This document shows, one piece after another, positions 1,093 to 46,925 of a stretch of 64,000 nt of DNA. The DNA lies in assembly GCA_043228905.1 (NCBI GenBank), contig JBHGNT010000010.1, positions 17,112,001 through 17,176,000 of the forward strand. Reading direction: 5' to 3'. The stretch comes from Azolla caroliniana (lineage: Eukaryota; Plantae; Polypodiophyta). Position 1 is the first letter of the stretch, and each line of letters starts with the position of its first letter. The translations under genes were made by a program, and so were the position numbers. The notes beneath the pieces are model-generated. The model was given only the letters and a program-made list of their open reading frames with translations. It searched no databases and had not been told where the DNA came from.

Positions 1093-4000
1093 TTCTCAAG
1101 GGCAAGCCACAAGAGGCCTGCCTCCCCACCCATTTATGATCTTGAAGATTCTTGCTTATGGATTGACATGAAGTTGCGGGCCCATATACACTATGGATGA
1201 GCTTGAGGATGGTACAGTAGATAATAAAAAATTCAGTTGTAGAGAGATCGATTGCAATCTATGGGAGTGGGCCTAGCCCATGGTCCATGGTGAGAATGAA
1301 CTTGAGTTCTTTAAATTTACAATGATGTGACTAGGCTAGCAAAAGGAATCGACAAAATTGTGGAAGTAGCCTTTCAATTTGGAAGTGATGTAAATAACCT
1401 CTTTTAGTTCTACAAAAGGGAGATGCAATAGAAGGGTGCTCCAAAAGTAAAAGATGCTTTCAAGGCATATTGTTGTCCAGGTTCCAACCTTGGATTATAG
1501 AACTACAAACCATAAACAAAACTTGGGTAGGTTTTGAATAGGCTTTGCTTATTGAGTTCGGCCTTGATTATGTGATAAGGATTACCTAGTAGGATCTTAA
1601 AAATTCGCCACGTTCTCTAATAAGGACAGTGGGTGCAGAACTAATATTAAGAAAGTTTGACCAGAGGTTTGAGCAAGTTCTCAATGCTTCATAAAATGAG
1701 TCTATGACCAGACAATGTCATATTAGTCCTCAAAGTTATGAGTGTGAAGGATAGAAGGGATCTAGGAACTCGCAATCAAATGCCCTTGTCACGAACTAGG
1801 TGGAGGTCAAAAGGGCGAGTGATAATTTTGTCGAGTAACTATAGAGGCTCAAGGGTTTCCAAGCCAATAAGTCAATGTTGTTTGAAAGTAAGAACAAGTG
1901 GTGATAGTGAGAATGCCTTTTTAGCATTCAACATTAATGGTTGTTTTCCCACGGTCATTGCCCCCACAATTGGATGCTCCACTCATGCCCAACAATATAT
2001 AGGTATGCGTCCATCCATAACTGAACCATTTAATGGGTGTTGTGATTGCGGCTCCCATTGTAATACATATAAGCATGTGTAGTAATTAAGGCGACATGGA
2101 ATTGAGCAAGTGTGGAAGTGCATGATGACATATGCGGTTGTTTTAGGACATGATAAAATGGTAATGTTCTTTCAAATTCCCCTAAAAAACAAGCAACTCT
2201 TCTAAAAATCCAGCAAATTTGTAGAAATAGAAGACAAGTATCCATGTACAACGCATTGCCAACATTATTATGAAGAACATTGAAGAAAAATATACTGAAA
2301 AAAAAAAAGATTGAGCAAATTTCTTCCTTTAACTAAAATGACTCTTTGAAAGTATATAGTATACATAGCCATAAGTTTCTTTTCTAACCTAAACATATTA
2401 AAGCAAGAGGACATATGCATACAATGTGTGTGCATGGTTAGTTGCATGGGAATAACATTGGTTATCCAAATCGAACAAGAAACAAGTGCAATAACTTTCA
2501 AACATTATTAGGACACTATTAAAGAAATATCAACAATATTTCAACAACTCAAAACCAAGAAGTAACATTTTGCTTCCGTTGGATGAGGCATCCTCCACCA
2601 TACATTTCCACAACTAAGAGTACCTTATGATGGAAATTAGTGTTCCATTCTAAGAGGAAATCATTCACATATGAGGCAGCATGTGTTAGGCCTTACTTGT
2701 TTGTACTCATGGTTTGACACATGTTTGGACACCATTAACATACATAAAACATGAGTTTGTTAACATTGTTGACATGGAAGGAATGAAAAGCAATAACATG
2801 CAACAATGATGGCACATAAAATAGATTCAGTGAAATGGACACACTAAGGTTATGGACTTCATTATGGGTATTCATCTTGTGACATTTCAATATGAAGTGA
2901 TCTATTTGCAAATCAGTTGGGCACTTGAAACAAGACTTTTGTGGCTAATTGTGCATGCTTAATTTTAGTGGCCACTACACATACTATATTTCTGATCTTT
3001 TCTAAAACAAAAACAGACAAAATAGAATTATCAACGTTCTTCAAATGTTATAAGATAGAAAAATATATATCTATCACTTTCAAAGAATACTTTAAAACAT
3101 GGAATTTGACCCCTTCAACTCCCTATCCCATAGATGATAGCACCCACAACAAAATGGGGAAGCTAAGAGAAAGAATAAGACTCTTATATGTTCATCTAGA
3201 CCATGATCACAATGACATTACTCCAAGGGTCATATTTGGGAGAGCCGGTGTCTATACATCATGTTGTCTTCAAAATTGCTCATTAAGAGCAAGCATAACA
3301 TATCAAAGTTAGTGTAAATTGGTAGACATACATAAAGCCTAATTTTAGTCGTTTAAGTAAAGTTGGCTCCATTTTATATGCTAACGTGCCACATGTGAAG
3401 AAAGAGAAACAAATATAAACTTGAAAAAAGCATTCTGCCAACCATAGAGATAGTTTTGGCATCAACCTAAAAAACCATACATTCTCTTTTTCCACATTTG
3501 ATGATTTTCTTGTTCCCTTGAATCCTATTGCTACTCAAACTCTGAAGAAGCCAAATTGCCGCAATGTAGACGATGACAAGAAAGATGGATCATGTCCTAG
3601 TGGTGTAAAATAAAAAGCATGCATCCAAGGGACGCATATGTTTTTGAATGTTGCACAAACACATCTTTCCACGAGGATATGGCTCGCTAGAGAGTGGGTG
3701 TCGTTGAGGCACATCGCAAACTTGAACTATTTGATTTGGATTTCCTATGACGAAACCTGCTTCTATCGAAAATCAACATTTTCTTTCTTTCAAGATGTTC
3801 AATTGCGGAAAAGGAAATATGTCTCCATCGTAGAGAACAATTGAACAAAAGGGAATTGTTCGGTTGCAGCAATGCGTATCGACGACCAATCATGTGATGG
3901 AAGTCCCTCGCACGCAGGTTATAACAGGTCATTGGCGATAAAAAATATGTATATAAATTGGATTCGATCGATGATGGTGGCGAGGCCTCAAAGATCTTTT

Positions 4001-4134
4001 TACATACATATGAGAGGAGATGGGTAGCATCCGGTGTAAATAGACTGTAAAGTTCGAAGGGATGCCCGGACATTATACACTTACGTAGGATACGAGAGGG
4101 GCAGCTGCCTGTGTAAATAGACTTTAAAATTTGG

Positions 4135-4136
<2 letters not shown>

Positions 4137-4174
<38 letters not shown>

Positions 4175-4199
4175 GACACACACAGACACACACAGACAC
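4137..4199. repeat. (CT)n followed by (CA)n/(CAGA) microsatellite upstream of the Rab-GAP gene
   Basis: Direct reading. GA/CT repeats are typical of plant promoters (BBR/BPC-type sites). Confidence 0.85.
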
Positions 4200-4213
4200 T
4201 GCACATACATATG

Positions 4214-4435
4214 TATAAAAAAAAGCTTCACTTCTCCTGGCTTTCTTGAGCTCCCATTTCCATCTTCCCTGCTCCTTGAATTTTTAGGGTTTCTCGGTGG
4301 AGCTCGCCATTCCTGTTTGCCCCCTCCCTCCCTCCCTCCCTCCCTCCCCTCCTCTTCTTCCTCCTTTCATTACCCTTCTTTTCCTCCATCTCCCCCCCTT
4401 CTAATCCTTAGCTCCCCCTGAATTTTCTCCTTCTT
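4214..4435 (+). promoter_or_regulatory. Putative core promoter / 5' end of the Rab-GAP gene: TATAAAA box followed by a pyrimidine-rich Y-patch
   Basis: TATAAAA at 4214-4220, then a long C/T-rich tract (about 4230-4435) leading into the repeat array and the gene. Confidence 0.5.
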
Positions 4436-5853
4436 GTTCCGAGAAGGAGAATCCATTGCCGTTTGGTGCACTGCTTCGTTCTTACGCTTCGTGGGAGGTA
4501 TAATTATACTTTGGAAGGAGGCGTTTCCCCCTCTCCTTCCTTCTGTTTTCTTTTAGAGCTATGCAAAATTGTGGAAGTCTTTGTATCAACGTTTCCGCAA
4601 TTCTTACAGTTTACAGTTCTGGTCCGAGGAGGAGAATCCGTTGCCGTTTGGCATTGATCTCCGTTCCTACGCTGCCTGGAAGGTATTGTTTTACTGCGGA
4701 AGGAGGTGTTTCATTCTTTCTTCTATTTCTTTTAGAGCCATGCGGAATTGTGGAAGTCTTCATGTCAACGTTTCTGCAATTCTTACAGTTCTGTGCTGAG
4801 AAGGAGAAACCATTGCCGTTTGGCACATTGATTTGTTCCTACGTTGCCTGGGAGGTATTAATTTACGGTGGAAGGAGGCGTTTCCGTCTTTCTTCTATTT
4901 CTTTTAGAGCCATGTGGAATTGTGGAAGGCTTCATGTCAACGGTTCTCTAATTCTTACAGTTCTGTTCTGAAGAGGAGAATCCATTGCCGTTTGGCACAG
5001 ACCTTCGTTCTTACGCTGCCTGGGAGGTATTATTTTACTGCGGAAGGAGGCGTTTCAGTCTTTCTTCTATTTGCTTTAGAGCTATGCGGAATTGTGGAAG
5101 TCTTGATGTCAATTTTTCTGCAACCCTTACAGTTCTGTTCTGAGGAGGAGAAACCATTGCCGTTTGGCACAGAGCTTTGTTCCTACGCTGCCTGGGAGGT
5201 ATTCAGTTACTGCGGAAGGAGGCGTTTCCCTCCTACTTCTACTTCTTTTAGAGCCATGCGGAATTGTGAAAGTCTTCATGTCAACGTTTCTGTAACTCTT
5301 ACAGTTCGGTTCTGAGAAGGAGTATCCATTGCCGTTTGGCACAGACCTTCGTTCCTAGACTGCTTGGAAGGTATTAAGTTACTGTGGACGGAGGCGTTTC
5401 CGTCTTTCTTCTATTCTTTTAGAGCTATGCGGAATTGTGGAAGTCTTCATGTCAACGTTTCTGCAACTCTTACAGTTCTGTTCTGAGGAGGAGAATCTAC
5501 TGCCGTTTGGCACAGAGCTTTGCTCCTACGCTTCCTGGGAGGTATTAATTTACTGCGGAAAGTGGCGTTTCCCTCTTTCTTTTATTTCTTTTAGAGCCAT
5601 GCCGAATTGTGGAAGTCTTCATGTCAACGTTTCTGCAACTCTTACAGTTCTATTATCTGGAGGAGAATCCATTGCTGTTTGGCACAGAGGCTCGTTCCTA
5701 GACTGCCTGGGAGGTATTAATTTACCGCGGAAGGAGGCGTTTCCATCTTCGAGGTATTTTTATTCTGTGAAAGGAGACGTTTGTCCCTCTTCTCTGTTTC
5801 GTTTAGATCTATGCGGAATTATGGAAGTCTTGATGTCAACGTTTCTGCGACAG
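4432..5853 (+). repeat. Tandem array of 8 units of about 172 bp in the putative 5' leader of the Rab-GAP gene
   Basis: The motif AG|GTAT recurs with GT at 4498, 4683, 4855, 5027, 5199, 5371, 5542 and 5714 (spacing mostly 172). TTGCCGTTTGG and ATGCGGAATTGTGGAAGTCTT recur with the same period. Confidence 0.95.
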
Positions 5854-5876
5854 GCTTGAAGGTGAAGCTGCTGGCA

Positions 5877-8247
5877 ATGACAATCAGCATTATATCCCTA
5901 AACGGTAGAAAGTAAGTAGTCTACAGAATCTTCTTTTGATTCTAGAAACCTCCTATTTCTTGGTTTGTATTCTCCATCCCCTTTCGAAGTTTCAAGAGGT
6001 GTTTTTAGTCGGGTTTTCCTGTCTTCTGTAAGTTTTCGCTGTGCATTGACATTCTCCAAGGATCTGAACAGTTCTAATAAGGTTTTCTGATCAAAGACTA
6101 TGTGTTTTTTGCAACGGGAAAGGAAGGTTTCTGGTGTTTTAGGTATTTGTGTAGACTTGTGAAAGAAAGATCTTTATTTTATCTCTTTCTTCTTGTGAGC
6201 TATATACATGGGGAATTGCTTGCGTAATTCTTTCCGTTTTGTATGTGTCTTCGTGCTTATAAATTCTCAAACAGCTAATTATCATCTTCCGAACTCAATT
6301 ACTATATATACTGTGAAAGAAAAGCTGTGTCTGTTTGTGCGTGAAATTTCTTTCACAGTATATTTCTTATTCTGAACATAAAAGCAATTTGCATTCCCTT
6401 TGTACCTATGTATGCTTTCTAATTGTCAAATGGCTATACGTAAATATTGTGTAATGAAAGCTCTGTCTGTTTGTGGTTGTGAGTCCTTGAACAGGTATGT
6501 TTCTTATTCTGAAAAGAGAAGGTGTTTGTTTTACCGTTTATGTCTACGTATGCAAATCGTCAAATAGTTGTATATCTATTGTAAAAGAAAAGCGTTGTCC
6601 ATGTATTTCATTTGTAGTAAATTATGTCTGTGCAGCAACTCTTGTTAAACAGTTGATGTATCTTCTGAAAACAAAAGCCTTGTTTGTTTTTTAGAGAAGA
6701 TATTAGAGGAAAAACCTTTACTTTATACTAAATGTATGCGGCTTTATTTTTTCTGTTTGTTAAGGTTATGATAGAGTTTATCTTTCTTTTGTGAATATGA
6801 TAGGCACCTGCCTAAGAATGGTAAGAAGAGCTGCCTCCCCCTCACACCAAAGCAATGGAAGAATGCATTTGACAAAGAAACAGGGCGATTACTCAATGGT
6901 GACAAAATTTTGCAAAGGGTTCGCCATGGGGTGCGTACATATTCTATTTATTTTGTTTTGAGACTATAGGTCTGATAATAGTGAATTGCAACTTACATCT
7001 TTATTTGAGCAGGGTGTGGAAGCCAGCATACGGGCTGAAGTCTGGCCTTTCCTATTGAACTTGTATGGAATTTCTCTCACACAGAAATCTTTTCTGTTTC
7101 TGGCTTGATGAGTCTCTGTCTCATCCAATTTGTTTTGTTTTGCAGCTACGGATTGGAAAGCACACAGAAGGAAAGGGAGGAAGAAAGACTTGTGAGAAGG
7201 TAATAATATAATTATTAAAGGAAATTAAAGAAATGCAAACTCGCACGATTCACACTCCAGATTGTTTCTTCGTCTATTTGTAGCCAAGTGTACGAGGATT
7301 TGAAATGGAGATGTAAAGTCGTACGCGAGAGTATCTCATCCCAGAGAAAGATGACCTCTGAAGATGTAATCCCATGTGAAGGAATGGAAGCAGACAGATT
7401 GGTGGCATTTCAGAGAAGCAAGTCCGGTTTGGTCGAAATGGATGCCAAGGCGAAGCAAGAATTTATCAATTGGCAGCGAATTATGAGGCTGGATGCAGTG
7501 CGCATAAATGCTGACTGGGTTCAACTCTCTTCCTCTCAAGCAAACATATCAAAAGGAGTAGCCAATCAACTAGCTATGGAGGTGGGCTTGAGGGATAATA
7601 TATTAGAGCCATCCTTGCAACATCACGCTGCAAGATTGGTGTCCATACTGGAAGTATATGCCTTATATGATCCTGAGATTGGATACTGCCAAGGAATGAG
7701 TGACCTTCTATCACCATTCGTTGCCCACTTAGATGAAGATTATCAAGCCTTCTGGTGCTTTGCATCATTTATGCATGCTGCTCGGCACAACTTCAGGATG
7801 GATGAAGAGGGTATTAAGCGGCAATTGCAAACAGTTTCCCGAATTGTGAAGCACAGTGATCCGCAGCTTTACAAGCATTTTGAGAAGATTGGTGCTGTTG
7901 ACTGCTATTTCATCTACAGAATGGTAGTGGTCCTCATGAGGAGAGAACTGTCCTATGAGCAAACAATATCCTTCTGGGAGACTCTCTGGGCAGATCGAAC
8001 TGCAGTGAGGCTTGATAAAGTGAAGATGTCCTGCAGGCGAGGTCGGGGTAAAGCCCCACCCACTAATGATCTACTCCTTTATGTCATAGCTGCTGCAATA
8101 AGGCAGAAACGAAGGGTGATCATGGACAACTGCGTGTGCATGGAAGAGGTGCTTGAAGAATGCAATGGCATGTCAGGAAATCTGAATATATGGGTCCTCT
8201 TGGATGATGCACGGAGTCTAATAGCATCGTTTCATCATAAAGTCTGA
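5877..8247 (+). CDS. TBC-domain Rab GTPase-activating protein (GYP7/RabGAP22-like). Exons 5877(or 5811)-5911, 6804-6930, 7013-7062, 7146-7199, 7284-8247; 409 aa (431 aa from ATG 5811)
   Basis: GT-AG junctions give one continuous frame: ...LTPKQWKNAFDKETGRLLNGDKILQRVRHG|GVEASIRAEVWPFLLNF|YGLESTQKEREEE... The arginine finger (IMRLDAVR) and glutamine finger (YCQGMSD) are intact. The first exon is inferred from donor AA|GTAAGT at 5912, whose phase matches the acceptor at 6803. Confidence 0.88.
6290..6600. repeat. Degenerate ~137-bp tandem duplication in the first coding intron of the Rab-GAP gene
   Basis: GTAT(A/G)TTTCTTATTCTGAA at about 6358 and 6495; CTA(T/C)GTATGC...GTCAAAT at about 6406 and 6544. 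Confidence 0.5.
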
Positions 8248-11200
8248 CGATTTATCTAATGGAGTCCTCGTCAGAAAAGAAGGATGACGACATACACACA
8301 AACAACACACAGGCATTTCTAATTGCTGCCCGCCTGCCTTCAGTATTGGAAAGAGACGGAACTAACCGCATGATCTTTCTTCTACTTTTTGGTCTCATCT
8401 CGAGTCCTACAATTTTGCTCCGCACATACATACATACATACTTGCACATGTATAAGCTTCTACTAAATATGCTTATAATGTCTCATCAAAGGTTAGGTAG
8501 GCGAGGCGCCTCTTGTAAATAAAATGTGTATATATAATGAATGAGGAAATGCACCTTGCTTTGACTCCAATTTGTCTCTGAATCTGTGTGGGATAATTTA
8601 AGTAATGAGCTCCAGCAATAACATTTAACATATGTATGGATGAGTCACTGCCCTGCATTGACACTCCAAACCTCATCTCAGAATATCTGTGATTGTTTGG
8701 GTGAGAGAATTATGTTCGTAGCAAGGAAAGGATACATGCACCATTAGTCCAGCAATTGCTTTCACTGTAAGCGTTGAGCAACATAATCTCCAGTGATGCT
8801 AGCCAAGGATTTATGCATATCATTGGTTGTCTTGATTTGCAATTCTAATATCTCACACCCATACCGTACCGTACCTTTGCTTTTCTTATTTTGTTGAATG
8901 CCATGGCCGATATGAAATTCGAATACGATCTTTAGGCCCCTTAGTATGTACTATGTACTATGTAAGGTAGAAACCACCTTTCACATGTTAAAGTATAGAA
9001 TGGGATGGGGTGTTTCACATCTAACATAGACGCTGGGATGGAGTGAAGCACTTGTTTTATGAGTTAAAAGCTTGCTAATGAATCAATGATATTATAAAGA
9101 GAGGGCACCAAGCAAGCAAGCACGGAAAGTGCAAATTTGTATATGATATTTAGGTTTCAATGACTAGAAACATTAGAAATATGCCATCAATTTACAGGTG
9201 GTTATTAAGTAAAAGGCGTAATTTAAATGGTTATGAAACCAAATATTTCTTTTAAACTCTCAAGGAGACCTCAATACTCTTGGATTATTATACTATAATA
9301 TTTAATGAGATTGCTGACATTTTGAATTGCCAAAATGTAGAAGGAATGTGCAAGGAGGCAAGGCAATCTGTTTTGGTCTTAATTTCCAAATTCAACAAGC
9401 AACATACCACTATTGTTCTCACTTCATAGAAACAATCTTATGAGGGAAACAACCCAAATCATATGCTAGAACTATTAAACAATGACTTGGCGGAAAATGA
9501 ATAGATAGAGCAATGACAACCAAGACGTTGGCGTTGAAACAACCATCCTTCGAAGAAACTGTAATAGCTCAATGTTCTAGCTTCATGGCGTTGCAAAGAT
9601 TTGAGGCCTCAAGTGATTTTTGCTAAAATGACTAAACCTTGAAAGAAGCTTTTTCAAGTGTCAAGACGGGAATATTCCGACAATCGAGGAAGGTCGTGGG
9701 TGATAGATTTTGAATATTCCGAAACATGAGGATTTTGAATCATGAGAGATGACTTGATGGTAAATCGTTGAGGTTGTTAGGATATTACCTAAGTTTGCAA
9801 GATTCAATGAGATCTATTAATCGTCCATGTCAGAGGATGTTTTGTTAGATTTGGACAATTTGTCAAAGTTGGATGTGGACAATAAGTATAAGTTTGATGA
9901 CATGTCGAAGTTATAGACAAATTGAACATAACATATACCCCCATCAAACCTATACATCCTTCGGTATGTGCCAATGTTTGGGAAACGTTGATGTATCATG
10001 ACGAGTTTTTACTTTTTGAACCGCCTTGCCATATTTATTTTCTCTTCTTATGTTATAACTTATTAGCAATATTGATTGATGTTGCATCCCTTCATACACC
10101 CCAACTTCTAGTTTGATTCACCATCCCCACTCTATAAACTAAACCTAGGCAAACTAGACACTATGAGCTTCACCCACTTGTTGATAATTTTCCACACCGA
10201 CCCTTCAGACCAAATTTAACGAACAACTAATTGGTTTTGGGTCAAGTATCTTTAAGGTCATCCCCTTTTTTTTCTCGCATCTCTTCAATATCTCCTCTTT
10301 TTTGTTCACTTTCCTATGTATTCCATTTTCTTCCTCGAGTGTTTTGCAACTTGGGCATGAACCTTCAACAATGTTTATTAAAATATTATCTAGTCTACTC
10401 AAGTCAACAAAGACTAAATTCTTTACAATTGACCGCATTTCTAGCTCATGTTCCTCATCATTGTGAATGGCACCCTATTCATTTATTTGATCAAGGAATA
10501 AATCACTCTTTGATCAAATAAACTCGTGTACTTGTATGGAAATCGCAACAACCTAATCACTAAGACGATTCTTTGGAAAAGAAACAAATATACCTGCACA
10601 TTCCAACTATGAATAAGAATAATTCAAAGTTCTTTTGATTTTCTTAACGTAAATGTGGAAAGCTAGCCTCTTGTTAAGTTGTTTGTAGTCGATGTGATGA
10701 AGTGAAGGCTCTATTGCATTGTTGTGATTGGTTAAAGGAGTAAGTTTAACTGCGTTACTTATTGAGGAGAGGAAAAATGGAAAAAATTGAACACGGGTTT
10801 TGTTTTAACGGACCATTTGTCTAAAGCATTCTGTAAAAAGAACTAATGACCATGGGTTTAGTCCAAGGTATATAGTCGTAGTGTGTGTTTAGAGATAAAA
10901 ATGTCCAATGTAGAAGTTTCAATAAATGAATCCGATAGTGTAGTCAATACGGTTATATTCTTTATATATCTAATATTCCTAAATAAATTGGAGGGGTGAA
11001 GATTGTAACTAATAATATCCTTTTTATTTCATAAAACAATGTTCATGCAAACAAATAACTTTGATTTAACAGATTCCAGGGTATTGAGAGCATGCATACC
11101 TCAATTGTAATGTTTTCTAGAGTTTGTGAAAATGAAAGAAGGGATTCAGTGAAATTTCAAAATAAACTAATTACTTTAAGCTAGATAGAAAGTAAGAAAA

Positions 11201-24937: not shown

Positions 24938-26090
24938 TAGAAATAAAGAGAGCTTCCATTAAAGCTTCATCCGTGTGTGTTTATTATCTGTCTATATCTT
25001 CTTGCCTTTCCTTTGTGTTTTTTGCTGAGCATAACCGACAAGTCCTCACATACGCTTCCGCGCATATCTATACTTCAACTGGTATCAAAGTGATCCACAA
25101 CTTGGCGGCAACAAACAGCCAAAACAAAAAAAAGGGCTGAAAGGAAAAAGACTAGGTTAGCAAATCTCACTTTCTAAAGAATCATGGCATCAACATCTGG
25201 TACAGTAGTTGAGATCCAAAAATTTGACTACAAAAACTTTGCCCTATGGAAGGAGATGATGCAGGATGTTCTGATTATTCAAAGACAGGTCGAGACCATT
25301 CGACACTCCAAAAAGCCTGCTTTAATGTCAGCCAATGAGTGGAGATCAATGGACGAAATCGCACGCTGTCGTGAAGATTTTCGTCCACAAGCGGAAACTC
25401 GAGCAACGAGAGCCAAAGAGTGATGTGCAACGTTGCACACGTACATAATGTATTTGTAATAGTAATAAAGGTATAACGATGATGTGGTTGTACGCACATC
25501 CACGCGAGAGAGAGAGAGAGAGGTACTATGCGGTACATAGGTACCTAGTTGTTTGTGAGGAGGTGGGAGTTAAGGGGCCATCAATCTCACCCCCCCCCCA
25601 AATCAAGGCAAATATCCTCTTTGAATGAAAGGGGATATTTTAGTCTCACTTTTGTAAGCGGTCTGCCCTCCTTGTGCTATAAAAGGAGAGAGAAGGCACC
25701 ATTGTGGGGGTTGCCTATTTTGTGTGAGTAAGGTATACCACTTAGTCGAGGGTTCTACTTCTTCCCATTTCGTTTTAGGGTTAGGGTTTCGGTTAGGGTT
25801 TTCTTCTTGGGTTTTCCTTTAGGGTTTTTCATATAGTCGTTTGGTGCGGCCATGGCGGCCACCATTTGTTGTAATCATTCATTTCTTAATAGAACTTCTT
25901 GTTGAGTATCTTGATTGCATCTTCTTCTTCTATCATAATGTCATATTCGTTCTCTTCTCCTCTTGAGCTAATCTTTCTCCTCCACTCCCTAGTCCAAGAC
26001 CCCCGTGGTCCCGCCCTTCTACACGCACGCGCGTAACAACGCGACATATTTGGTGAACCCGACGTGAAACAGGCGGCAGAGGAGCAGAAG

Positions 26091-28217
26091 ATGAGGGGTT
26101 CGGATCTTGCAGAGGCCATGGCTTCGGCCGTGGACCGGATAGTGAGCGCGCTCGAGGGCACCAGCGCCCTTGACAGGGCTATTGAGGCGATCGTCGGTAC
26201 GATCGGCCAGTTCAGTGGAAAGGATGCCACGAGTTATTTGGCGTCCTACCGGGCAGAGATGTTGATGAGGGATATTCCGGAAGAGAGGCGTCTTGCCGGA
26301 TTCCCTCGAGTGGCGATGCCAGGCATCCATGCGGAGGTGCTCGAGGTCCGAGCGGAGAGCCGGACTTGGGAAGAGTTCGAAGGACGGCTCTTGGAGAAAT
26401 ACGGGTTGGATGATGCGCTTCGACTTTCGAAGCGGAGCTTCATGGAGTGGGTGGAGTCCCCCAACAAAGGAAGAAATGCGTCGGTACTCCTCCGGGAGTT
26501 TGAGGAACGCTTTGCGCGCCTTTCGGCGCTCGATCGGACTGTTCTGGACACATGTCGTGTCCTACTATTTGTCAAATCGGTTGACACACGGGATCGGGGG
26601 CAAGTTGGCTCCTTACTGGAAACCGAACACGGGCTGACGACCGACTGGGCCGTGGTAAAGAGAGTCTACGGCCGTTTTGACAAACGGTGGGAGTGGGCTA
26701 ATACAGAGGCGACCGGGGCGGGACCTGTCGCAGCAAGGAAGCTCAAACCGATACCGCAGGCACGAAGGGAAGAGACCCGGGAGTGGCTCGAAACCAGTTC
26801 GTCTTCGACCGGCATGATCAGAGGCTCGTCCGGGGGAACAACTCTGGAGGAGTTGACACGAGCGGTAAAGGATCTCCAAATCGCCCAGGTTCGGAGGGAA
26901 GGCGGCGATCAAGCTCGTGACCGACGGCCTCCGGCAGGAAGTAGGTGCATGTGGTGCGACGAGGTCGGCCACATCCAGAAAGACTGCGGGGACTTTATGG
27001 AGGCTTTGAGAAGCCGGGTAGTGTACATGTGGGAGGGTCGGGTGCACACCAGCGATACCCGGAGGGCCCTGAACCGAAACGACAGGAGAGGAGGAATGAA
27101 AAGGCTGATGGAAGAGGCGGCAGCCCGGCACGCGGAGACCGTCCACTACTCAGCATCAGCCGGTATTCGGGTCGGGGGCAGCGGGGTCCGGAAGGAGAAC
27201 AAAGCCGAGTTCTGGCCGACGGTGCTGGAAGGCCTCGCTGGTGCCCGACTAAAGAGAGACGAGGCGGACCGCGCGGAGAAGCGGGTCTAGGAGGTAACCG
27301 GGTGGAGTGACCCGGTCGAAGAAAAGACGGGTTTCGTCGAAGCAGCTTGCCAGAACTACGAGGCTCTGGTTGAAGACAAACGGGTAGGTAAAGACGGAGG
27401 GGCCGGACCCTCACAGAGATACGAAACCCGATTCGGGCCGAAACGGAACGAGGTCGGTGAGTCCAATGCCCGGGATAACCACAAGAAGGGCGGATATCGG
27501 TTGAGCATGGAGATCGAAAGGACCATGGACCTATGAAAGGTCCTGGAAGAACGAATCCTCGACAACAAGGTGGAACTGTCGTTGCGAGAGGTGCTCGGGA
27601 TAACCAAGAAGGAGTTCCACGACTCCATCGTGGACTTGGTGAAGAGGAAGAGGCTATCGACGGAGGTAGAACCGGACAGGCCGGTGGAAGTGCGGACGGC
27701 GCACATAGAGGACATGGCACTGGAAGACGAGTGGGCGGAGAGCCACTATTCGAGGCCACACTGGGCCCGAGCGACCACAGAAACCCCGGTGAAAATCGGA
27801 GATGTTCAGGAACTGGTGGTGGCACTGGTGGACCACGGTTCGGAAATAAACCTGATGTCCATGGACTTCTACAAAAAGGGGAAATGGCCGATCAACACTA
27901 AGCACGGGTGGAAGATACAGGCGGCGACGCGCGCCACCGAGGAACTACACGAGGCCTGCCCAAACGTGCGAGTCAAGATCGGCGACGTCGAAATAGACCA
28001 GCACTTCTTTGTGCAAGAAACGTCCTTGCACCCGGTCATTCTAGGGGAACTGTACATTACGGCGGCGCGAATGGAGACCAAGGTGCTAGACAATGGGTCG
28101 GCTTACGCGAGGGTCAAGAGCCAGGACGGGCGTCATTCGGTCCAGTTCCTGACGGTACGACCCAACCACGAGTGAAACTGCGAGTCCCTCGGTGGCGAGA
28201 ACTGAGAAGATTTTTAG
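26091..28217 (+). pseudogene. gag-pro: Element E ORF1: gag (CCHC knuckle) + linker + aspartic protease, several in-frame stops
   Basis: CMWCDEVGHIQKDC; ALVDHGSEINLM; premature stops near 27288, 27534, 28173 and 28203 relative to the copy in element H. Confidence 0.85.
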
Positions 28218-31200
28218 AGAGGGCTGCCAAGGCGTGGGGCCGCGATAGTCCGGACACTCCGGGAAAACCCCACAAATGTACGATAAAAGCGAAACCAAAG
28301 AATCCTTGTACGATAAGTAGGAAGTTTTGATTCTCCGACAATGGAGGGTGTACGATAGTCGGCGTCGTAGGCCGAGAAAAGACAAGGGCGGAAGAGCGAC
28401 TTCGGGCGTGCGGAGTTCTCGGGCCCAGCGAGGAAATCAACAGAGCCGTGGAGGCGGTCTCCTTCGATGATACCTTGGGAATACTACGAGAGGTGGTCGG
28501 AGAGGGCCTTAAAGAGGACCGGACGATACCGGTTTGTTCAGAAGAGATGTATGAAGTCATCGCGGACTTCAGTCGAGGGCTCGAGTCGGATCGGATGGCC
28601 CGGGTTAACACGAAGTACAAGACTGTGGACCGGAAGGTAAGGCCAGTCGCGGCACCCTTACCGGAGGGCAGCGAGTTGCGAATCGAGGGGGTCGCGTTGG
28701 ACCCCAGTTTACGTGATCCGGCCTGCATAGGATACACCTTCACCGACAGAACGCTACGGGAGCTCAAAATCGGTGGGGGCGGGTTCCTACTGTCGGCGGA
28801 AGAAGACGGGTTTCGGAGAATGCTCGGAAGGCACGGGAAAGCCTTCGCATTCTCGCCGGAAGAAATCGGGTGCGTAGACCCGACAGTCGTGAAGCCGATG
28901 GTGATATTCACGGTACCGCGTGTACCATGGAATCTCAAGCCAATTTCGGTACCGAGAGCTCACATCCCGGAGCTGATGGAGCTATTGAGGCAGAAAGTTA
29001 ATATGGGCATCCTCGAACCGTCGAGTGCCCCGTACTCGAACCGGTGGTTTACTGTACCGAAGAAGAACAGGACGTTGCGCTTCATTCAAGACCTGCAGCC
29101 GGTCAACAGAGTGACCATTTGGAACGTAGGAATCGGACCAACGATAGACGAGTTCGCGGAGGCCTTTGCCGGATGGTCGATCTACTCGGTCGGTGATCTG
29201 TACTTGGGGTACGATCAGTTCCAACTAGCCGTAGAGAGCAGAGACATTACGACGATGCGGACTCCTCTCGGCCTAGTGCGGATGTGCACCCTGCCGCAAG
29301 GAGGGACGAACTCGGTGGCCCACCTGGTGAATGCGATGAACAAGGTGCTGAGGGATTGTATCCCGGACATCACCATGCCATTCTTGGATGACATCCCAAT
29401 CAAGGGATGTCTGGTGGAGGAAAAGGACGAAACGATCAGACCGGACGGATGCTGGAAATTCGTGGCAACACACATTGACGACTGCGAGAGGGTGCTGCAG
29501 AGGCTAGAGGACGCGAGGCTCACCTTCTCCGGGGAAAAATCGGCCTTCGGGCAATCAGAGATCATGGTCGTCGGACATCTATGCGGATCGTATGGCCGGA
29601 AACCGTCTCCAACAAAGGTGGAAGCCATCTCTGCTATGAAGCCCGACTGTAACTCGGTCACGGAGGTACGGAGGTTCTTGGGAGCATGCGCGTTCTACCA
29701 CATATGGATCCCGCATTACGCCCACGTTGCCGAGCCGCTATACGTGTTGCTGAAAAAGGGGCAAAAATTCGAGTGGCGAGACGAGCATACGGAGACGGTG
29801 CGAAAGATGAAGGAGGCTCTTGCTGCGGCTCCGGCACTCCGGAAGGCTGTCTACGAGAAAGGCACTCCCGTCTACATAACGGTAGATACGAGTCCGACCA
29901 GGATCGGATGGGTTGTCAACCAAGAAGACGAGGACGGCATCCGGTTCCCAATCCGGTTCGGCGCGAAGGTCCTCAGCGAGCGACAGCGAGGATACGCCCA
30001 GGTTAAACGCGAACTCTGGGGTATCGTTTCGGCGGTAAAGGCCGATAAAGACTATCTGATTGGGACAGAGGTGATTATCGAGACAGACTGCCTGCCGATT
30101 CTCGGCATGGTTTCCGGATGTGCAACCCCGGACCTGGCGATGCTCAGGTGGATAGCGTACATCAAGTCCCTGGATCCGGAAATACGACACATTTCCGGGA
30201 AAGACAATGCAATGGCCGACATGCTTTCGAGGGCGCGATTCAACGACGAGGGCGGCATGGTTTCGGATGACAAGGAAGTCGGCGTAGACTTCTTCGAGGC
30301 GGCTTACGTAAGAACCGAGGGGGGGAGCACTCCGGCGCTTAACGATTTCAACGAGAGCAAGTACGATGGGGAGTGGCTGCAGATTGGGGGATTCTTAAGG
30401 ACAATGATGCCGGACGTATCGTGGACAAGGGACGAGGCCAACCGGATCCGGAAGAAAGCATACCGGTTCTTTCTCCGGGACGGATACTTGTGGAAGCACC
30501 CGAAGAAGAGGAACGACATCCCACTCCGAGTAGTGGCGACAAAGGAGGAACAGGAGGAATTGCTGAAGGCCTACCACGACAGCCCTGGGCTGGGCATCGT
30601 GGGATGTGGGCTACGTTCGAGAAGCTGAAGGGGAAGTACTGGTGGCCGGGACTGTACCGGGACGTGCATCGGTTCGTGACAACTTGTGACAGCTGTCAAG
30701 TGCACTCCATAGTCCGACATCGAGACGAGCTTCACCCCACATACCCTCCGGCCATCCACTTCAAATGGATGATAGATTTGGTGACGATGCCGATGGGCGT
30801 AGGGCAGATGCGATATCTGGTGCTGGCCCGGGAGGACCTGACGAACCAGGTGGAAGGCTGAGCCCTACAGAACAAAATGACCGTGGCCGTGTGTCGGTTC
30901 CTGATCGAGGACGTGATATGCCAGTACGGGTGCGTCGGAAAGATCGTGGCTGACCGCGGGGAGTTGGACGCCGAAGAGGCCGAGGAGCTGTTCAACCGGT
31001 TTGGGGTCAAGCTCTCGCTCACCACAGCGTACAATCCGGAGGCAAACGGGAAGGTAGAGCGCGGGCACGGGCCAATCGTCAAAGCGCTAGTCCGGGCATG
31101 CGGAGACCAGGTCGGGAACTGGCCACGGTTGTTACCTTACGCCTTGTGGGCGGACCGGACAATGCACAGTTCGGTAACCGGGTTCATGCCGTCAGAGCTC

Positions 31201-31794
31201 ATGTTCGGACAGAAGCCGATCATGCCGATGGAACGGACGATCTCCTCTTGGGCGACAGTAGACTGGAGTGACGAAATGAGTCGGGAAGAACTGCTAGCGG
31301 CGCGTATACGGCAGCTCGAGCGGAGGCCAGAGGACGTGGAACGAGCGGCGGAGAGACTTCGGGCGGCGAGGATGAAGAACAAAGCCCGGTTCGACCGGAC
31401 GCACCGGCTCCGACCGAAGAAAATCGAAGAAGGCGACTGGGTGCTAGTTTACGACAGCAGCCTCGACAACCAGCACCGAGCAACACGGAAGTTCGCGAAG
31501 CGATGGTTCGGGCCTTACGTGGTAATGAGCGCCAACGACAACGGGACGTATCACCTGGCGGAACTCGACGGTACGAGGATGGCGATGCCGGTAGCAGGGA
31601 AGCAGGTCAAAGTGTTCCAGAAACGCCACGACGACGAACCGGATCTAAGAGGCTTGGACAGCGAAGACGAACAGTCCGAAATGGAGGGCGAACCGATGGA
31701 CGAAGAAACGGGACCCAGACCGGTTTTCTCCAACCAGAAACCAAATTTGGCACATACCGGTGGATGCGCGGTTAGGTGGGGGCGGATGTCGTGA
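28208..31794 (+). pseudogene. pol: Element E ORF2: RT-RNase H-integrase, in the -1 frame relative to ORF1
   Basis: LPQGGTNS, PFLDDIPI, ITVDTS (RNase H), integrase HHCC (HRG...CDSC), VADRGE, NPEANGKVERGH, WFGPYVV. One frameshift near 30585 and stops at about 28328 and 30859. Confidence 0.88.
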
Positions 31795-33935
31795 AGAAAA
31801 CCGTCCCTTGGCGCAATCGGTGAATAGCACACGTGAACCGGCCGTTCACGTGTGCGCACCCTTAATGTATATAATAGAGAATTAGGTACAGAGAGAGATC
31901 CGGGGTAGTTAGATTCGGTAGGTAGGAAGTAAATGAGGGAGACGGCTCCCTTCTAGACGCTATAAAGGAGAGGGAGACGCAAGGAGAAGGGATCGCGCAT
32001 TGAGGAGGAGGAAGTGTTGTCGGACCGGAACCGAACGCTTCTCCTCTGTCTGTTCTCTATTGCTCTTCTCTGCAGGTTTCGGGAGGCTCGCGCTGCTTCG
32101 AGGAACACCCATGTGCTTCCGGAAGCACCTCCATCCTATCCCCATTTCGTGCGCAGACGAACAGGCATCGGCATCTGTTCGCCGGCCTGTTCGGTTGTAG
32201 CCGCTCGCGTGTTCTGCTATGTACTTGTTATTCGTTAATATACAAACACTTGTCTCTCCCTGTCTCTGTGTCCATTCGCATCTTCTGTGTTGACGGGCCA
32301 CGCCCCTGCGTTTCTTTGCTCATACGTGACCGGGCGTCTCTCTCCTTCTCTTTCCCCTTCTATCACCTGCTCTTCGGTTCAAGACCCCGGTGGTCCCGCC
32401 TCGTTTCTCCACGCACACGTGTAGTAACGCGACAACGCTCCACCATTCGAATGCACCTAGCTGAAAACGTCTACTTTAGCATGACAAAAGAGACGACAAT
32501 GTTCTCATTATGGGAGAAGCTACAAGCCATGTACGAGAAAAATTCCTCATCTTCAAAACTAATATTGATCAAACAACTGTTCAACATGAAGATGAGAGAA
32601 ACCGATCCGGCTACTTCTCACATCAACAACTTCAACCGGGTGTTGTCATAACTCTCCTCACAAGGGATCAACTTCGAAGAAGAAGTGAAAGCCCTTGCCC
32701 TCCTATCTAGCTTGCCTGCGAGTTGGGAGGTATTCTGCACGACATACGCCAATAGTCGACCGATCCTAAATTTGGATGAGATGAACGGCCAAGTCCTCAC
32801 CGAGGACAATCCGCAAAAATCAATGGGACTTACCATCGATGAATCGGCAGAAGCCCGTCACTCAACCGAGTCGTTCGACCGATATAGTCGAACGAGAGAA
32901 CAAGCTGACAGAATTGGTCGGAATACCAACCGATCAAAAACTAGGGGAGACCGACAACGGTCAAAGTCGGGAATGGGCCGATCAAGCGAATTCTGCACAC
33001 ACTGCTGGAAAGTTGGCCAAAATGTTTTAGACTGTTGGTCAATCAAGAGGAAAGAGAGTGGTCGGCGATCCAAGCGAAATCCAGGCCGACTCGACTCAAA
33101 CCACTAATGTTCTTGCCTTTTTTTCTATTTGACGATGGAGTCAAATCTATGCTTAGAGGAATGGGGCTCAATCCAACCTTAGCATCATTGGACCTCTCAA
33201 GAGGATCATTCTTATCCAAATTCACATGAAATAAAAATGTGGGGAACATTTGTTTTAGTTATGCAAAGTTCAAAGCACTTGAAACATTGTTTTGAGGCTC
33301 ATAAACTGTATACATTTGATGGTCACAACCTTATATACAAGTGTATATTGTTTGCAAGACAACCTCCATAACGAGAAGTACCATGTTGTACAACTACTTG
33401 TACCCATTAGTGGTGATCAATCCATAAGGGGTCGTGAACGTAGCGGAAAAGACCGACCCAAACTTATGGCATGGCCAACTCGATCGGTTGATGGTGGTCG
33501 GCTACATGCCTAAACTCCAAGCAAAGAAGAACTTATGCGAGCATTGTCGATCTGCGAAACAGACCCGAAGTCCGCACTCTCTCCACTACGAGACAGTACG
33601 ACAACCCCTAGAGCTCGTGCACACAGATATATGTGGGCCCATGCCAGAGCGATCACTAAGAGGCTCCCGGTACTTCATCACCTTTGTAGATGAATGTACA
33701 CGAAAGGTCTGGGCCTACTCGATTACGTCCAAAGACAAAGCACTCGAGGTCTTCACTCGGTGAACATCTAGGTCGGTATGGGTGTGTCCGGAAGATTGTG
33801 ACCGACCGAGGGGAGCTGGACACGCAAGAAGCCAAGGAGCTATTCGAGCGACTAGCGGTCAAGCTTTCCCTCATGACGGCATACAATCCGGAGGCTAACA
33901 GGAAAGTTGAACACGAACACAGGCCGATCGTGAGA

Positions 33936-42762: not shown

Positions 42763-44902
42763 GAATCAAATTGTCAGAACCAAGGATAAAAGATAGAGTG
42801 ATGGAAGAAGGATATTAGAGAACATGAGAAGAAAGGAACGAAATACTAAGAGAAGAATGGATGTATAAGATAGAGAAAGAAAGAGAATGGATACAAGATA
42901 TGTAATGAGAGCTAAAGTCTGGTGTTGATTCGAATTGATTTGAGAATACATGTATGCCCTTATTTATAGGTTCCTATAGAATAGCTTAGAGATTTCTAGA
43001 ATGTTCTAGACCTAGAATGCTCTAGGACATTCTAGAACATTCTAGAATAATCTAGAGGTTTTACAATAATCAATGTAATGCAAGAAGTAGCTTTTATTGT
43101 TTCATATAACAATAAGCTATCTTAATGGTTGAGGTTTTCAAGTATGGATTACAAGGTTCGAGGTTCAAGTTTGGGTGACGCCATAATGGTCATGTGTTCA
43201 TGACAGATGCCACGAGCTATTTGGAGGCTTACCGAGCCGAAATGGTGATGAGGGACATCCCGGAGGACAGGCGATTGGCCGGATTCCCTTGAGTGGTGAT
43301 GCCAGGCATCCACGGGGAGGTGCTTGAGGTACGGGCTGAGAGTCGAACCTGGGAAGAGTTTGAAGGTCGGCTCCTTGAAAAATACGGGCTTGATGACGCG
43401 CTTCGGCTATCGAAGGGGGACTTCATGGAATGGGTGGAGACCCCTAAAAAGGGGAGAAACGCGTCGGTGCTCCTTCGGGAGTTTGAAGAACGCTTCGCAC
43501 GTCTTTCGGCGTTGGACCGGACCGTACTGGACACAAGTCGTGTCCTATTGTTCGTTAAATCGGTGGACGTAAGGGACTGGGAGCAAGTGGGCTTCTTGCT
43601 GGAGACCGATGAAGGCCTAACAACCGACTGGGCCGTGGTTAAGAGAGTCTGTGGCCGTTTTGACAAACGGCATGAGTGGGTCGATAAAGGCTTGACGGGG
43701 GTGGGTTCTGTTGCGACAAGGATGGTCGAGGTACCCCCACCGACGCGAAGGGAACTAGCTCGAGACCGGCTCGACTTCGACCGGTGTGGTCAAAGGCTCA
43801 TCCGGAGGAGCGGATCTGGAGGAGCTGACTCATATGGTGAGGGACCTCTAGATTGCACAAGAACGGAGGGACGGCGACGAATAAGTTCTTGACCGAAGGC
43901 CTCCGGCTGGGAACCGATGCTTGTGGTGCGACGAGGTCGGCCACGCCCGTAAGGACTGTGGGGACTTCGCCGAAGCGGTAAGAGCTAACGTGGTGTACCT
44001 ATGGAACGGTTGAGTGCACGCTAGCGAGACCCGAAGGGCCCTGGATCTTAATGTCGAACGAGGGGTTATGAAACGACTGATGGAAGAAGCGGCGGCTCGC
44101 AACACGGAGACCGTCCACTACTTGGCATCGGCTGGAATCTGGGTTGGAAGTGATGAAGTCCGGAAGACGAAGGAAGCCGGATTCTGGCTGTTGATGCTGG
44201 AAGGCCTCGTTGGCGTACGGCTGAGGAAAGAGGAAGCGGACCACGCGGAAAGACGGGTCCGGGAGGCAACCGGGTGGAGTGACCCGGTCGAACAGAAGAC
44301 TGGCTTCGTTGAAGCCGCTTGCAAAACTACGAGGCTCTGGTGGAGGACAAGCGTGCGGGTAAGACCGGAGGGGCCGGACCCTCACAACGATATGAGACCC
44401 GGTTCGGGCAAAAGCAGAATGATGCCGGTGCGACCGGCACACCAGATAAAGCCAAGAGGGTCGGGTACCGATTGAGCACGGAGATCGAGAGGACTACGGA
44501 CCTACGAAAAGTCCTCGAGGAACGTATCCTCGACAACAAAGTGGAGTTGTCATTGAGGGAAGTGCTCGGAATCGCCAAGAAGGAGTTCCACGACTCCATC
44601 GTGGACTTGGTGAAGCGGAAAAGGCTTTCGACAGAGCCGGAGTAGGAGAAGCCAACGGAGGTACGAACGACGCACCTAGAAGACATGGCTCTAGAAGACA
44701 GTTGGCGGAGAGCCACTATTCAAGGCCACATTCGGCTAGAGCAACCACGGAGACCCCCGTTAGGATCGGAGATGTTCAGGAGCTGGTGGTGGCGTTGGTG
44801 GACCACAGTTCAGAAATCAACTTGATGTCCATGGACTTCTACAAGAAGGGGAAGTGGCCGATCAACACCAAGCACGGGTGGAAAATACGGGTAGCAACGC
44901 GC

Positions 44903-46925
44903 TGTCGCGTTGTTACGCGCATGCGTGGAGAAACGAGGCGGGACCACCGGGGTCTTGAACCGAAGAGCAGGTGATAGGAGGGGAAAGAGAAAGAGAGAGA
45001 CGACCGGTAACGTATGAGCAAAGAAACACAGGGACACGGCCCGTCAACGCAGAAAACACGAATGGACACAGAGACAGAGAGACACGAATGTTTGTATATT
45101 AACAAATGACACAAAACAACAGAGCACGCGAGCGGTTACAACCGAACAGGCCGGCGAACAGATGTCGATGCCTGCTCTTCTGCGCACGAAGGGGGATAGG
45201 ATGGAGGTGCTGCCGGAAGCATACGGGCATTCCTCGAAGCAGCGCGAGCCTCCCGAAATCCTGCAGAGAAGAGTGATGGAGAATGAACAGAGGAGAAGCA
45301 TTTGGTTACAGTCCGACATCACTTCGTCCTCCTCAATGCGCGATCCCTTTCTCCCCGCGCCTCCCTCTCTTTTATAGCTCCAAGAAGGGAGCCGCTTCCC
45401 TCATTAACTTCCTACCTACCGAATCTAACTACCTAGGATATACCTTTGTACCTAATCCTTTATTATATACATTAGAGGGCGCGCACGCGTGAAGAGCCGG
45501 TTCGCGCGCGCTATACACCGATTGCGCTAAGGGACAGTTTTCTTCACGACATCCGCCCCCACCTAACTACGCATCCACCGGTATGCGCCAAAATTGGGTT
45601 CTGGTTTGGAGAAAACTGGTCCGGGTTCCGGTTACTCGTTCATCGGTTCCTCCTCCGTTCCGGACTGTTCGTCGTCGCTGTCTAGGCCTCTTACATCCGG
45701 TTCGCCGTCGTGGCGCTTCTTGAACGCCTTGATCCGCTTCCCTGCTACCCGTACCGCCATCCTCGTACCGTCGAGTTCCGCCAGGTGATACGTCCCGTTG
45801 TCGTTGGCGCTCGTTACCACGTAAGGTCCAAACCACTGCTTTGCAAATTTCCGTGTTGCCCGGTGCTGGTTGTCGAGGCTGCTGTCGTAGACTAGCACCC
45901 AGTCGCCTTCCTCGATTTTCTTTGGTCGGAGCCGGTGCGTTCGGTTGAACCGGGCTTTGTTCCTCATCCTCGACGCCCGAAGTCTCTCCGCCGCTTGTTC
46001 CACGTCCCTTGGCCTCCGCTCGAGCTGCCGTATACGCGCCGCTAGCAGTTCTTCCCGGCCCATCTCGTCTCTCCAATCCACTGTCGCCCAAGAGGAGATC
46101 GTCCGTTCCATCGACATGATCGGCTTCTGTCCGAACATGAGCTCTGACGGCATGAACCTGGTTACCGAACTGTGCGTTGTCCTGTCCGCCCACAATGCAT
46201 AAGGTAACAGTCGTGGCCAATTCCCGACCTGGCCTCCGAATGCCCGGACTATCGCTTTGACGATCGGTCCGTGTCCGCGCTCCACCTTCCCGTTCGCCTC
46301 CGGATTGTATGCTGTGGTGAGCGAGAGCTTGACCCCTATCCGGTCGAACAGCTCTTCGGCCTCTTCGGCGTCCAACTCCCCGCGGTCAGCCACGATCTTC
46401 CTGAGCACCCGTACCGGCATATCACGTCCTCGATCAGGAACCGACACATGGCCGCGGTCGTTTTGTTCTGCAAGGCTTGGCCTTCCACCTGGTTCGTCAG
46501 GTCCTCCCGTGCCAGCACCAGATATCGCATCTGCCCTACACCCATCGGTATCGTCACCAAATCTACCATCCATTTGAAGTGGATGGCCGGAGGGTATGTA
46601 GGGTGAAGCTCGTCCCGATGTCAGACTATGGAGTGTATCTGACAGCTCTCACAAGTTGTCACAAACCGATGCACGTCCCGGTACAGTCCCGGCCACCAGT
46701 ACTTCCCCTTTAGTTTCTCGAACGTGGCCCACGTCCCACGGTGTCCAACCCAGGGGCTGTCGTGGTAGGCCTTCAGCAACTCCTCCTGTTCCTCCTTCAT
46801 CGCCACTACTCGGAGCGGGATGTCGTTTCTCTTCTTCGGGTGCTTCCACAAGTATCCGTCCCGGAGAAAGAATCGATACACTTTCTTCCGGATCCAGTTG
46901 GCCTCGTCCTTTGTCCATGACACGT
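44903..46925 (-). mobile_element. Element G: 3' remnant (integrase + PPT + 3' LTR 45551-44903) of the Trp-primed family, inserted antisense in the protease of F
   Basis: LTR closely related to the 3' LTR of E; integrase ORFs 45632-46925; flank GCGC; 5' part missing. Confidence 0.88.

Follow-up and report, generated by a model that had tools for sequence, protein, structure and literature searches.

We characterized a gene for a predicted Rab GTPase-activating protein (Rab-GAP) and the tandem array of a 172-bp unit that precedes its start codon. Both lie in a 64,000-nucleotide stretch of the fern Azolla caroliniana (contig JBHGNT010000010.1, positions 17,112,001 to 17,176,000), which we call the window; all coordinates below are window positions, and all features are on the forward (+) strand. 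The gene model comprises coding segments at 5877-5911, 6804-6930, 7013-7062, 7146-7199 and 7284-8247 (stop codon 8245-8247) and yields a protein of 409 amino acids, with the upstream coding exons assigned by frame reading. The open reading frame (ORF) at 7288-8247 in the last exon matches the Pfam domain PF00566 (RabGAP-TBC) with an E value of 2.9e-32 and 112.5 bits against a cut-off of 25.2. TBC domains carry an arginine finger (IxxDxxR) and a glutamine finger (YxQ), and both catalytic-finger motifs are readable in the translation of 7288-8244 as IMRLDAVR and GYCQGMSD. A homologue search with the last exon only gave 822 matches at E <= 1e-20. Among those with names, fern proteins (Adiantum, Ceratopteris) come closest, at 60-72% identity, the seed-plant homologues are annotated as 'rab GTPase-activating protein 22' or 'gyp7-like', and the 99%-identical protein cluster contains ENA metagenome assemblies only. 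Judged by its sequence the gene is a member of the Gyp7/RabGAP22-like TBC family, with predicted GAP activity.

The array was detected by Tandem Repeats Finder at 4435-5749 as 7.6 copies of the 172-bp unit with 83% matches and a score of 1755, and its end moves to 5853 once the rearranged last unit is counted in. Two unit cores of 27 and 25 nt, searched across the 64-kb window with up to 3 mismatches, occur 7 and 8 times where 0.00 occurrences are expected, and within the window none of these lies outside the array. The array is real and far beyond chance. A first-pass annotation, made from the letters of this DNA, had read it as eight exon/intron cassettes in the 5' leader of the Rab-GAP gene, each with a 66-nt exon and a 106-nt intron. 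The eight AG/GTAT donors it listed (4498, 4683, 4855, 5027, 5199, 5371, 5542 and 5714; the slash marks the splice point) and its eight CAG acceptors (4616, 4788, 4960, 5132, 5304, 5475, 5647 and 5853) are all present. The RNA contig joints described below bear out the 66-nt exon/106-nt intron model for the regular cassettes and correct it near both ends of the array, where the first acceptor is 4609 rather than 4616 and the last donor is 5754 rather than 5714. Acceptor 4609 makes exon 2 73 nt long, while donor 5754 makes exon 8 106 nt long and its intron 100 nt. A 40-nt internal duplication of the intron 5' part in the terminal unit (5714-5793) produces two donors 40 nt apart, of which the downstream one, 5754, is used. 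This duplication is kept in every relative examined below, and the unused GT at 5714 reads GG in one of them (L002). All eight array introns start with GTA and end with CAG, in keeping with U2-type GT-AG spliceosomal introns, a candidate branch-point motif (e.g. TCAAC) can be read ~22 nt upstream of the AG, and the 66-nt exon parts are 82-84% alike among units (pairwise divergence 0.16-0.18).

As RNA data we used Logan contigs of the public runs X1 and X15, which come from two studies, together with X2, compared with window positions 3900-8700. X1 and X15, at 0.36 and 0.37 of sampled words, are both transcriptome-like in size. Across the coding part, their contigs leave out each canonical intron (5912-6803, 6931-7012, 7063-7145 and 7200-7283), with GT..AG joints at 6930/7013, 7062/7146 and 7199/7284. 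The 892-nt GT..AG intron at 5912-6803 is joined across in X1 and X15, and its bins at 5993-6797 have zero depth in X1, X15 and X2. Because the canonical introns are skipped and these bins are empty, X1 and X15 behave as RNA.

Within the array, GT..AG joints were seen for seven of the eight leader introns. Intron 1 (4498-4609) is removed in both X1 and X15, introns 3 (4855-4960) and 4 (5027-5132) in X15, intron 5 (5199-5304) in two X1 contigs, and introns 6 (5371-5475), 7 (5542-5647) and 8 (5754-5853) in X1. The first-pass annotation had staked its model on spliced reads at the repeated GT/AG sites, and the contigs do use these sites. One X1 contig chains the joints 5368->5474, 5539->5646, 5751->5852 and 5911->6804 with three coding introns. 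Since this chain joins leader exons 6-9 to the coding exons, the cassettes belong to the 5' leader of the Rab-GAP mRNA. Unit copies are joined in series, exons 5-6, 6-7, 7-8 and 8-9 in X1 and exons 3-4 and 4-5 in X15; no listed joint skips a unit, and thus mutually exclusive use of the copies was not found.

At the 5' end of the locus a TATA-like box (TATAAAAA) can be read from the sequence at 4214-4221, followed by GCTTCACTTCTCC, an arrangement kept in all three lineages of relatives, and the transcription start site (TSS) would lie ~25-35 nt 3' of this box, near 4245-4255. The earlier annotation had named a TSS downstream of ~5800, with the array left untranscribed, as a result that would refute it, and the contigs show otherwise. 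One X15 contig starts at 4281 with 17 extra letters, 11/17 of which match 4271-4281; since RNA contigs reach back to ~4271-4281, transcription begins upstream of the array. The features directly upstream of the TATA-like box are (CT)14 and (ACACACACAG)3.4 microsatellites (4137-4199), and in the relative L011 a long (CT)n run also precedes the TATA box.

Leader exon 1 would span 4248-4497, its 5' end being approximate and its 3' end given by the joint 4497/4610 in X1 and X15. It is CT-rich, with a (CCCT)6.8 run at 4322-4348, and its final 63 nt are the exon part of repeat unit 1. Intron 1 (112 nt, GT..AG) holds an upstream ATG at 4561. The start of leader exon 2 (4610-4682, 73 nt) comes from the observed joint, whereas its end is predicted from the conserved AG/GTATTG donor; the following intron 2 (4683-4788, 106 nt) is likewise predicted, with donor and acceptor conserved in all relatives and unspliced contigs (X1 record 2 and X2 record 17) as its only coverage. 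Five regular 172-bp cassettes occupy 4789-5647, with 66-nt exons 3-7 at 4789-4854, 4961-5026, 5133-5198, 5305-5370 and 5476-5541, and all five introns (3-7) were seen as GT..AG joints skipping 105-106 nt. Leader exon 8 (5648-5753, 106 nt; joints 5541/5648 and 5753/5854 in X1) consists of the terminal unit's exon plus the 40-nt duplication with the unused donor 5714, and the 100-nt GT..AG intron 8 carries ATGs at 5811, 5821 and 5833. The unique exon at 5854-5911 (joints 5753/5854 and 5911/6804) contains the start codon at 5877 (MTISIISLNGRK), and exon and ATG are kept in all relatives. As had been proposed, ATG 5877 is in frame with the TBC exons, here by way of the observed 5911->6804 junction, and is the first AUG of the fully spliced mRNA.

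Contigs that run unspliced through array introns were found alongside the spliced ones in X1 (record 1, 4488-4637, 0 differences; record 2, 4608-4886, 1 difference; record 3, 5169-5332, 1 difference), in X15 (record 10, 4997-5160, 1 difference; record 11, 5174-5353, 1 difference; record 12, 5183-5455, 18 differences) and in X2 (record 17, 4604-4768, 0 differences). Those with 0-1 differences lie across introns 1, 2, 4 and 5, with introns 4 and 5 covered over their whole length, and the more divergent one extends into intron 6. Genomic DNA or bulk pre-mRNA does not explain these contigs, since the interior of the 892-nt intron is without coverage in the same runs. Retained-intron forms of the leader therefore exist.

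Between 4212 and 5876 there are 16 ATGs (4561, 4740, 4762, 4912, 4934, 5084, 5106, 5256, 5278, 5427, 5449, 5599, 5621, 5811, 5821 and 5833). The first-pass annotation had placed every upstream ATG inside the introns, and this holds for all 16 under the corrected boundaries as well; the region of leader exon 1 has no ATG between 4212 and 4560. The fully spliced leader of ~782 nt contains 0 ATG versus 9.8 expected from its composition, and its non-redundant part of 379 nt contains 0 versus 3.5 expected, with 2.4% of shuffles likewise free of ATG, while the array introns (847 nt) hold 16 versus 14.5 expected. The leader is AUG-free only in the fully spliced mRNA, and selection appears to keep it so.

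The upstream AUGs (uAUGs) are thereby confined to retained-intron isoforms, the arrangement found where upstream open reading frames (uORFs) control expression through 5'-untranslated-region (5'-UTR) intron retention. The 19-codon uORFs described earlier from 4740 (in intron 2), 4912, 5084, 5256 and 5427 are real; introns 3-7 each have a uATG, and introns 3-6 each have such a uORF. The uORF of intron 7 is longer, its ORF from 5599 indeed extending to 5859 when left unspliced. If one internal intron is retained, the mRNA gains a 19-codon uORF whose TGA stop lies in the following exon. Across 15 distinct 19-codon uORFs there was no sign of purifying selection on the encoded peptide (ratio of nonsynonymous to synonymous substitution rates, dN/dS, ~1.3); the variable columns number 7, 10 and 5 at codon positions 1, 2 and 3, so that third positions are the least variable. 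In the relatives the uORF region carries frameshifts (L001, L002 and L011), a 7-nt deletion and other indels, and the ATG is lost in some units. Molecules with retained array introns expose uAUGs and would be expected to be poor templates for Rab-GAP translation or targets of degradation, an expectation of lower output that draws on what is known of uORFs and nonsense-mediated decay (NMD) in plants (PMC3315328). As far as the evidence goes, retention is a passive cost of the structure rather than a demonstrated control device.

We also considered the repeat exon as a coding repeat. One frame (FCSEEENPLPFGTELRSYAAWE) is open in 6/8 units, and this candidate was rejected on the TAG stops in units 6 and 8 and the lack of a start codon; about 1 in 3 frames is open over 22 codons by chance. 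The spliced leader offers no plausible frame for a coding extension, as each frame is interrupted by stops and a start codon is lacking.

Orthologous genomic contigs from 16 samples were collected by exact-protein look-ups and one pattern scan, and lineages were set by substitutions in 2.7 kb of non-repeat flank. Lineage A comprises the window with L001, L002 and L003 (0-1.4% divergence), lineage B comprises ten contigs (~5.5% from A and 0.6-3.5% among themselves), and lineage C consists of L011 (~5% from A and 8% from B). A hidden Markov model (HMM) of the unit reveals a common architecture in all loci: a first partial unit, N full units, the terminal unit with its 40-nt duplication and two donors, and the unique ATG exon. 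The number of units varies from 2 to 8, as the first-pass annotation had suspected it might, with 8 in the window and L002, at least 7 in L013, 7 in L001, 5 in L012, 4 in L006, L008, L010 and L011, 3 in L009, L016, L019 and L021, and 2 in L017. In the unit tree u1, u2, one internal unit and the terminal unit are orthologous across lineages, while u3, u4, u5 and u7 occur mostly in the window's lineage, the one counterpart outside it being that of u4 (the third unit of L011). This pattern fits an expansion in the window's lineage together with single-unit losses elsewhere.

Used donors are all GTA and used acceptors all AG in 12/12 parsable loci, and across these 12 orthologous loci 0 of ~58 repeat exons contain an ATG. 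In an alignment of 42 units, 46/172 columns are invariant, among them all five columns of the AGGTA donor. Divergence between the window and L002 is 3.7% in leader exons, 4.4% in array introns and 3.8% in the 892-nt intron, and orthologous units of different lineages differ by 11.5% in the exon, 12.4% in the 5' part and 12.0% in the 3' part of the intron. With exon and intron parts diverging equally, extra constraint on the exons or on the uORF region was rejected. A dispersed repeat or introner-like mobile element was rejected as well, on a search confined to the window and the metagenome contigs that did not extend to the rest of the genome, since 9/9 unit-bearing metagenome contigs map to this locus and the window has no other copies; L015, the tenth 19-mer match of the metagenome scan, showed neither a unit nor similarity.

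Further contigs deserve mention here. L005:1-5942 (JGI 3300047537; 74% protein identity) has the same exon layout near the TBC domain and no 172-bp unit upstream, and as its relation to the Rab-GAP gene may be orthologous or paralogous, the age of the array cannot be read from it; it carries instead a long (CATA)/(ACAC) microsatellite block at 2670-3535 and a (TTC)24 run at 4163-4233. L021:1-12071 (ERZ1034385) is a 12-kb palindromic contig in which the whole locus, gene and 3-unit array included, is present twice in inverted orientation, the copies facing away from a centre of 1.4 kb; this probably reflects an assembly artefact, though a true inverted duplication is possible.

We propose that the array consists of tandem-duplicated exon-intron cassettes in the 5' UTR that are spliced serially, and that selection keeps splice competence and an AUG-free leader; this we hold to be a likely account of the locus. 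Transcription would start 5' of the array behind the TATA-like box near 4214, and the cassettes, each a 66-nt non-coding exon with a 105-106-nt GT-AG intron, are spliced one after another to give the ~782-nt leader of eight leader exons and the unique exon with start codon 5877. The array's origin would lie in an ancestral leader segment with a single exon and a single intron, which was tandemly duplicated again and again. Because the repeat unit is a complete cassette, each duplication adds one intron and one exon. Whole units would be gained and lost continually, giving 2 to 8 in close relatives, and selection would act on only two things, the splice competence of the units and the freedom of their exon parts from AUG, while the remainder, the intronic uORF peptide included, drifts.

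The first-pass annotation had offered a different interpretation, namely a rheostat in which the number of retained introns, or use of an internal TTTAG/AG acceptor, sets the uORF load and with it Rab-GAP output, copy number being a heritable tuning knob; we consider it here with retention regulated and copy number under selection. In a more graded form, which goes beyond that annotation, each cassette would be spliced or retained independently and each retained intron would contribute one uORF. Splicing efficiency would then tune Rab-GAP translation in as many as eight steps, perhaps in response to stress or a change in temperature, and unit number, readily altered by unequal exchange, would move the set point between populations and species. 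We consider both forms unlikely, although several observations would suit them. Retained-intron and spliced contigs coexist next to an 892-nt intron whose interior is without coverage, all uAUGs are intronic with exons AUG-free across 12 loci, copy number differs between lineages, and gating of uORFs by alternative 5'-UTR splicing is established in plants (PMC3315328). However, no listed X1 or X15 joint uses the TTTAG/AG acceptor, the uORF peptide is unconstrained and frameshifted in three relatives, and some first and last units no longer have the intron ATG. The exon, 5'-intron and 3'-intron parts moreover diverge alike, and a spread of 2 to 5 units inside one lineage at 1-3% flank divergence looks more like drift or assembly noise than tuning. 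Still less probable is that the extra leader introns were favoured as an expression booster. Intron-mediated enhancement by 5'-UTR introns is established plant biology, and here eight introns, efficiently recognised, lie within ~1.6 kb of the inferred TSS, but relatives with 2-4 units retain an intact gene.

Two other explanations are very improbable, to about the same degree. If each repeated intron carried a small nucleolar RNA (snoRNA) or microRNA (miRNA) and the exons were mere spacers, the layout would resemble imprinted snoRNA/miRNA clusters (PMC6346411), and within the array the intron 3' half is indeed slightly the best conserved part (divergence 0.09-0.12 versus 0.16-0.18), an excess that is not significant (Fisher p = 0.10). 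This 3' half is not better conserved between species, however, most units lack C/D boxes, and no Rfam family matches 4100-6100 on either strand up to E = 1. Two introns fold no better than their shuffles (z -1.47 and -0.16) and the one exon examined shows no unusual folding either, and we rejected the small-RNA host on these grounds. The joints might instead be genomic deletion variants or repeat mis-assemblies in the contigs, given that the evidence consists of contigs, that repeats are prone to assembly errors, and that one joint 'goes back 66' and two others are non-canonical. Against this stand seven independent joints, found in two runs of separate studies, that all fall exactly on GT..AG; each takes out exactly the 100-112-nt intron part of its own unit, and these units differ in sequence. 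The X1 joints 5368->5474 through 7197->7282, with one contig each, share a common depth of 10.9, so that array joints match the canonical coding-intron joints, and the intron parts are present in 12/12 genomic contigs.

Several points weigh against serially spliced, selectively maintained cassettes as we propose them. The RNA nature of the runs is on record a guess, backed only by the 11 skipped canonical introns and the empty 892-nt intron, and contigs give neither isoform proportions nor strand nor true 5' ends. No junction of intron 2 (4683-4788) is among the listed joints, and no single record spans the whole leader, so that the picture of all eight exons in series within one molecule is assembled from several contigs. 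Copy numbers of the relatives come from short-read metagenome assemblies at 1.4-4x coverage, in which repeats could collapse; as the flanks of L001 and L002 are identical, yet the two have 7 and 8 units, some of the copy-number differences may reflect such collapse. The selection arguments rest on related, non-independent units. Finally, L008 has an ATG in leader exon 1 (~290-310), reading CATCCATGTCC where others read CATCCATCTCC; it would be the sole upstream AUG in any mature leader among the loci and, at 3.3x coverage, may be an error.

Tandem exon duplications are frequent in UTRs (Ivanov and Pervouchine 2022, PMC9013439), an example being the nine duplicated first exons of Drosophila hydra (PMC1904467). 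The Azolla locus belongs with them in that homologous exons lie next to each other upstream of ATG 5877 in one gene, and as in those cases non-coding exons are multiplied together with flanking intron sequence and the spliceosome recognises the copies. Whereas UTR tandem exon duplications mostly serve as mutually exclusive or alternative first exons, the neighbours here are joined in series and are additive, and the unit is of minisatellite size (172 bp) and varies in number between close relatives. Intron gain by tandem genomic duplication, the Rogers model, has been described for the potato RdRp gene (PMC4974935) and in Drosophila (PMC2891723). There too a new spliced intron came from a recent, lineage-specific tandem duplication that brought splice signals with it. 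In those cases a coding segment with AGGT was duplicated once, in contrast to the repeated duplication of an exon-plus-intron unit in a 5' UTR, which here gives up to eight introns with intermediate numbers in relatives.

Gating of uORFs in plant 5' UTRs by alternative splicing or retention has been reported by Kalyna et al. 2012 (PMC3315328) and for ZIF2 (bioRxiv 10.64898/2026.02.12.705568). As here, retention of a leader intron brings upstream AUGs into the mRNA and the fully spliced mRNA lacks them, but in those systems experiments demonstrated an effect of one such event on translation or NMD, while the eight parallel events at this locus are known from sequence and contigs. The MSY2 minisatellite in the testis-specific 5' UTR of human DDX3Y (PMC3039753) is likewise a lineage-specifically amplified repeat (~100 nt in MSY2) within a long spliced 5' UTR. 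Its units serve as promoter and TSS without being spliced one by one, whereas each unit here has its own donor and acceptor. Host genes of snoRNAs and miRNAs (PMC6346411) share the serially spliced arrays of non-coding exon plus intron; their introns carry the small RNA that explains the amplification, while here none is detectable and the array precedes a protein-coding ORF.

Few recently born spliceosomal introns are well documented (PMC4974935), and this locus is a clear case of recent intron gain, reached by tandem duplication in several steps, of which relatives show intermediate stages. What appears to be new is the serially spliced, copy-variable cassette array, in which the copies add up within one leader. 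A targeted literature search returned no description of such an array in a plant 5' UTR, which does not prove that there is none. The relatives form a natural series for asking how much sequence a fern needs to delimit an exon and an intron, how splice sites persist when all else drifts, and how expression responds to an extra leader intron or to the retention of one that contains a uAUG. If copy number or retention matters for Rab-GAP output, the array would be an unusual and easily mutable expression dial; if neither matters, it is still a clean example of 5'-UTR intron gain by tandem duplication.

Two kinds of unusual joint accompany the regular ones. Non-canonical joints from 5456 or 5467 to 6821 (ends GT..TG and TC..TG; side 26) occur at depth 6-12 in X1 and X15 together with 6830 G>A, and neither the window nor any of the 21 fetched loci contains the joined word CAAC/GTAAGAAGA; these joints could stem from a second allele or a paralogue, from joining at the RNA level or from a chimeric contig. 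The X15 joint 5196->5131, which goes back 66, connects the end of leader exon 5 to an exon-5-like start and could reflect an extra unit in that organism, ambiguity with exon 7 (the first 20 nt are identical) or a back-splice. On the scale of the whole window, blocks with a G+C content of 56-60% stand out at 26000-32000 and 44000-56000 against a background of 33-45%.

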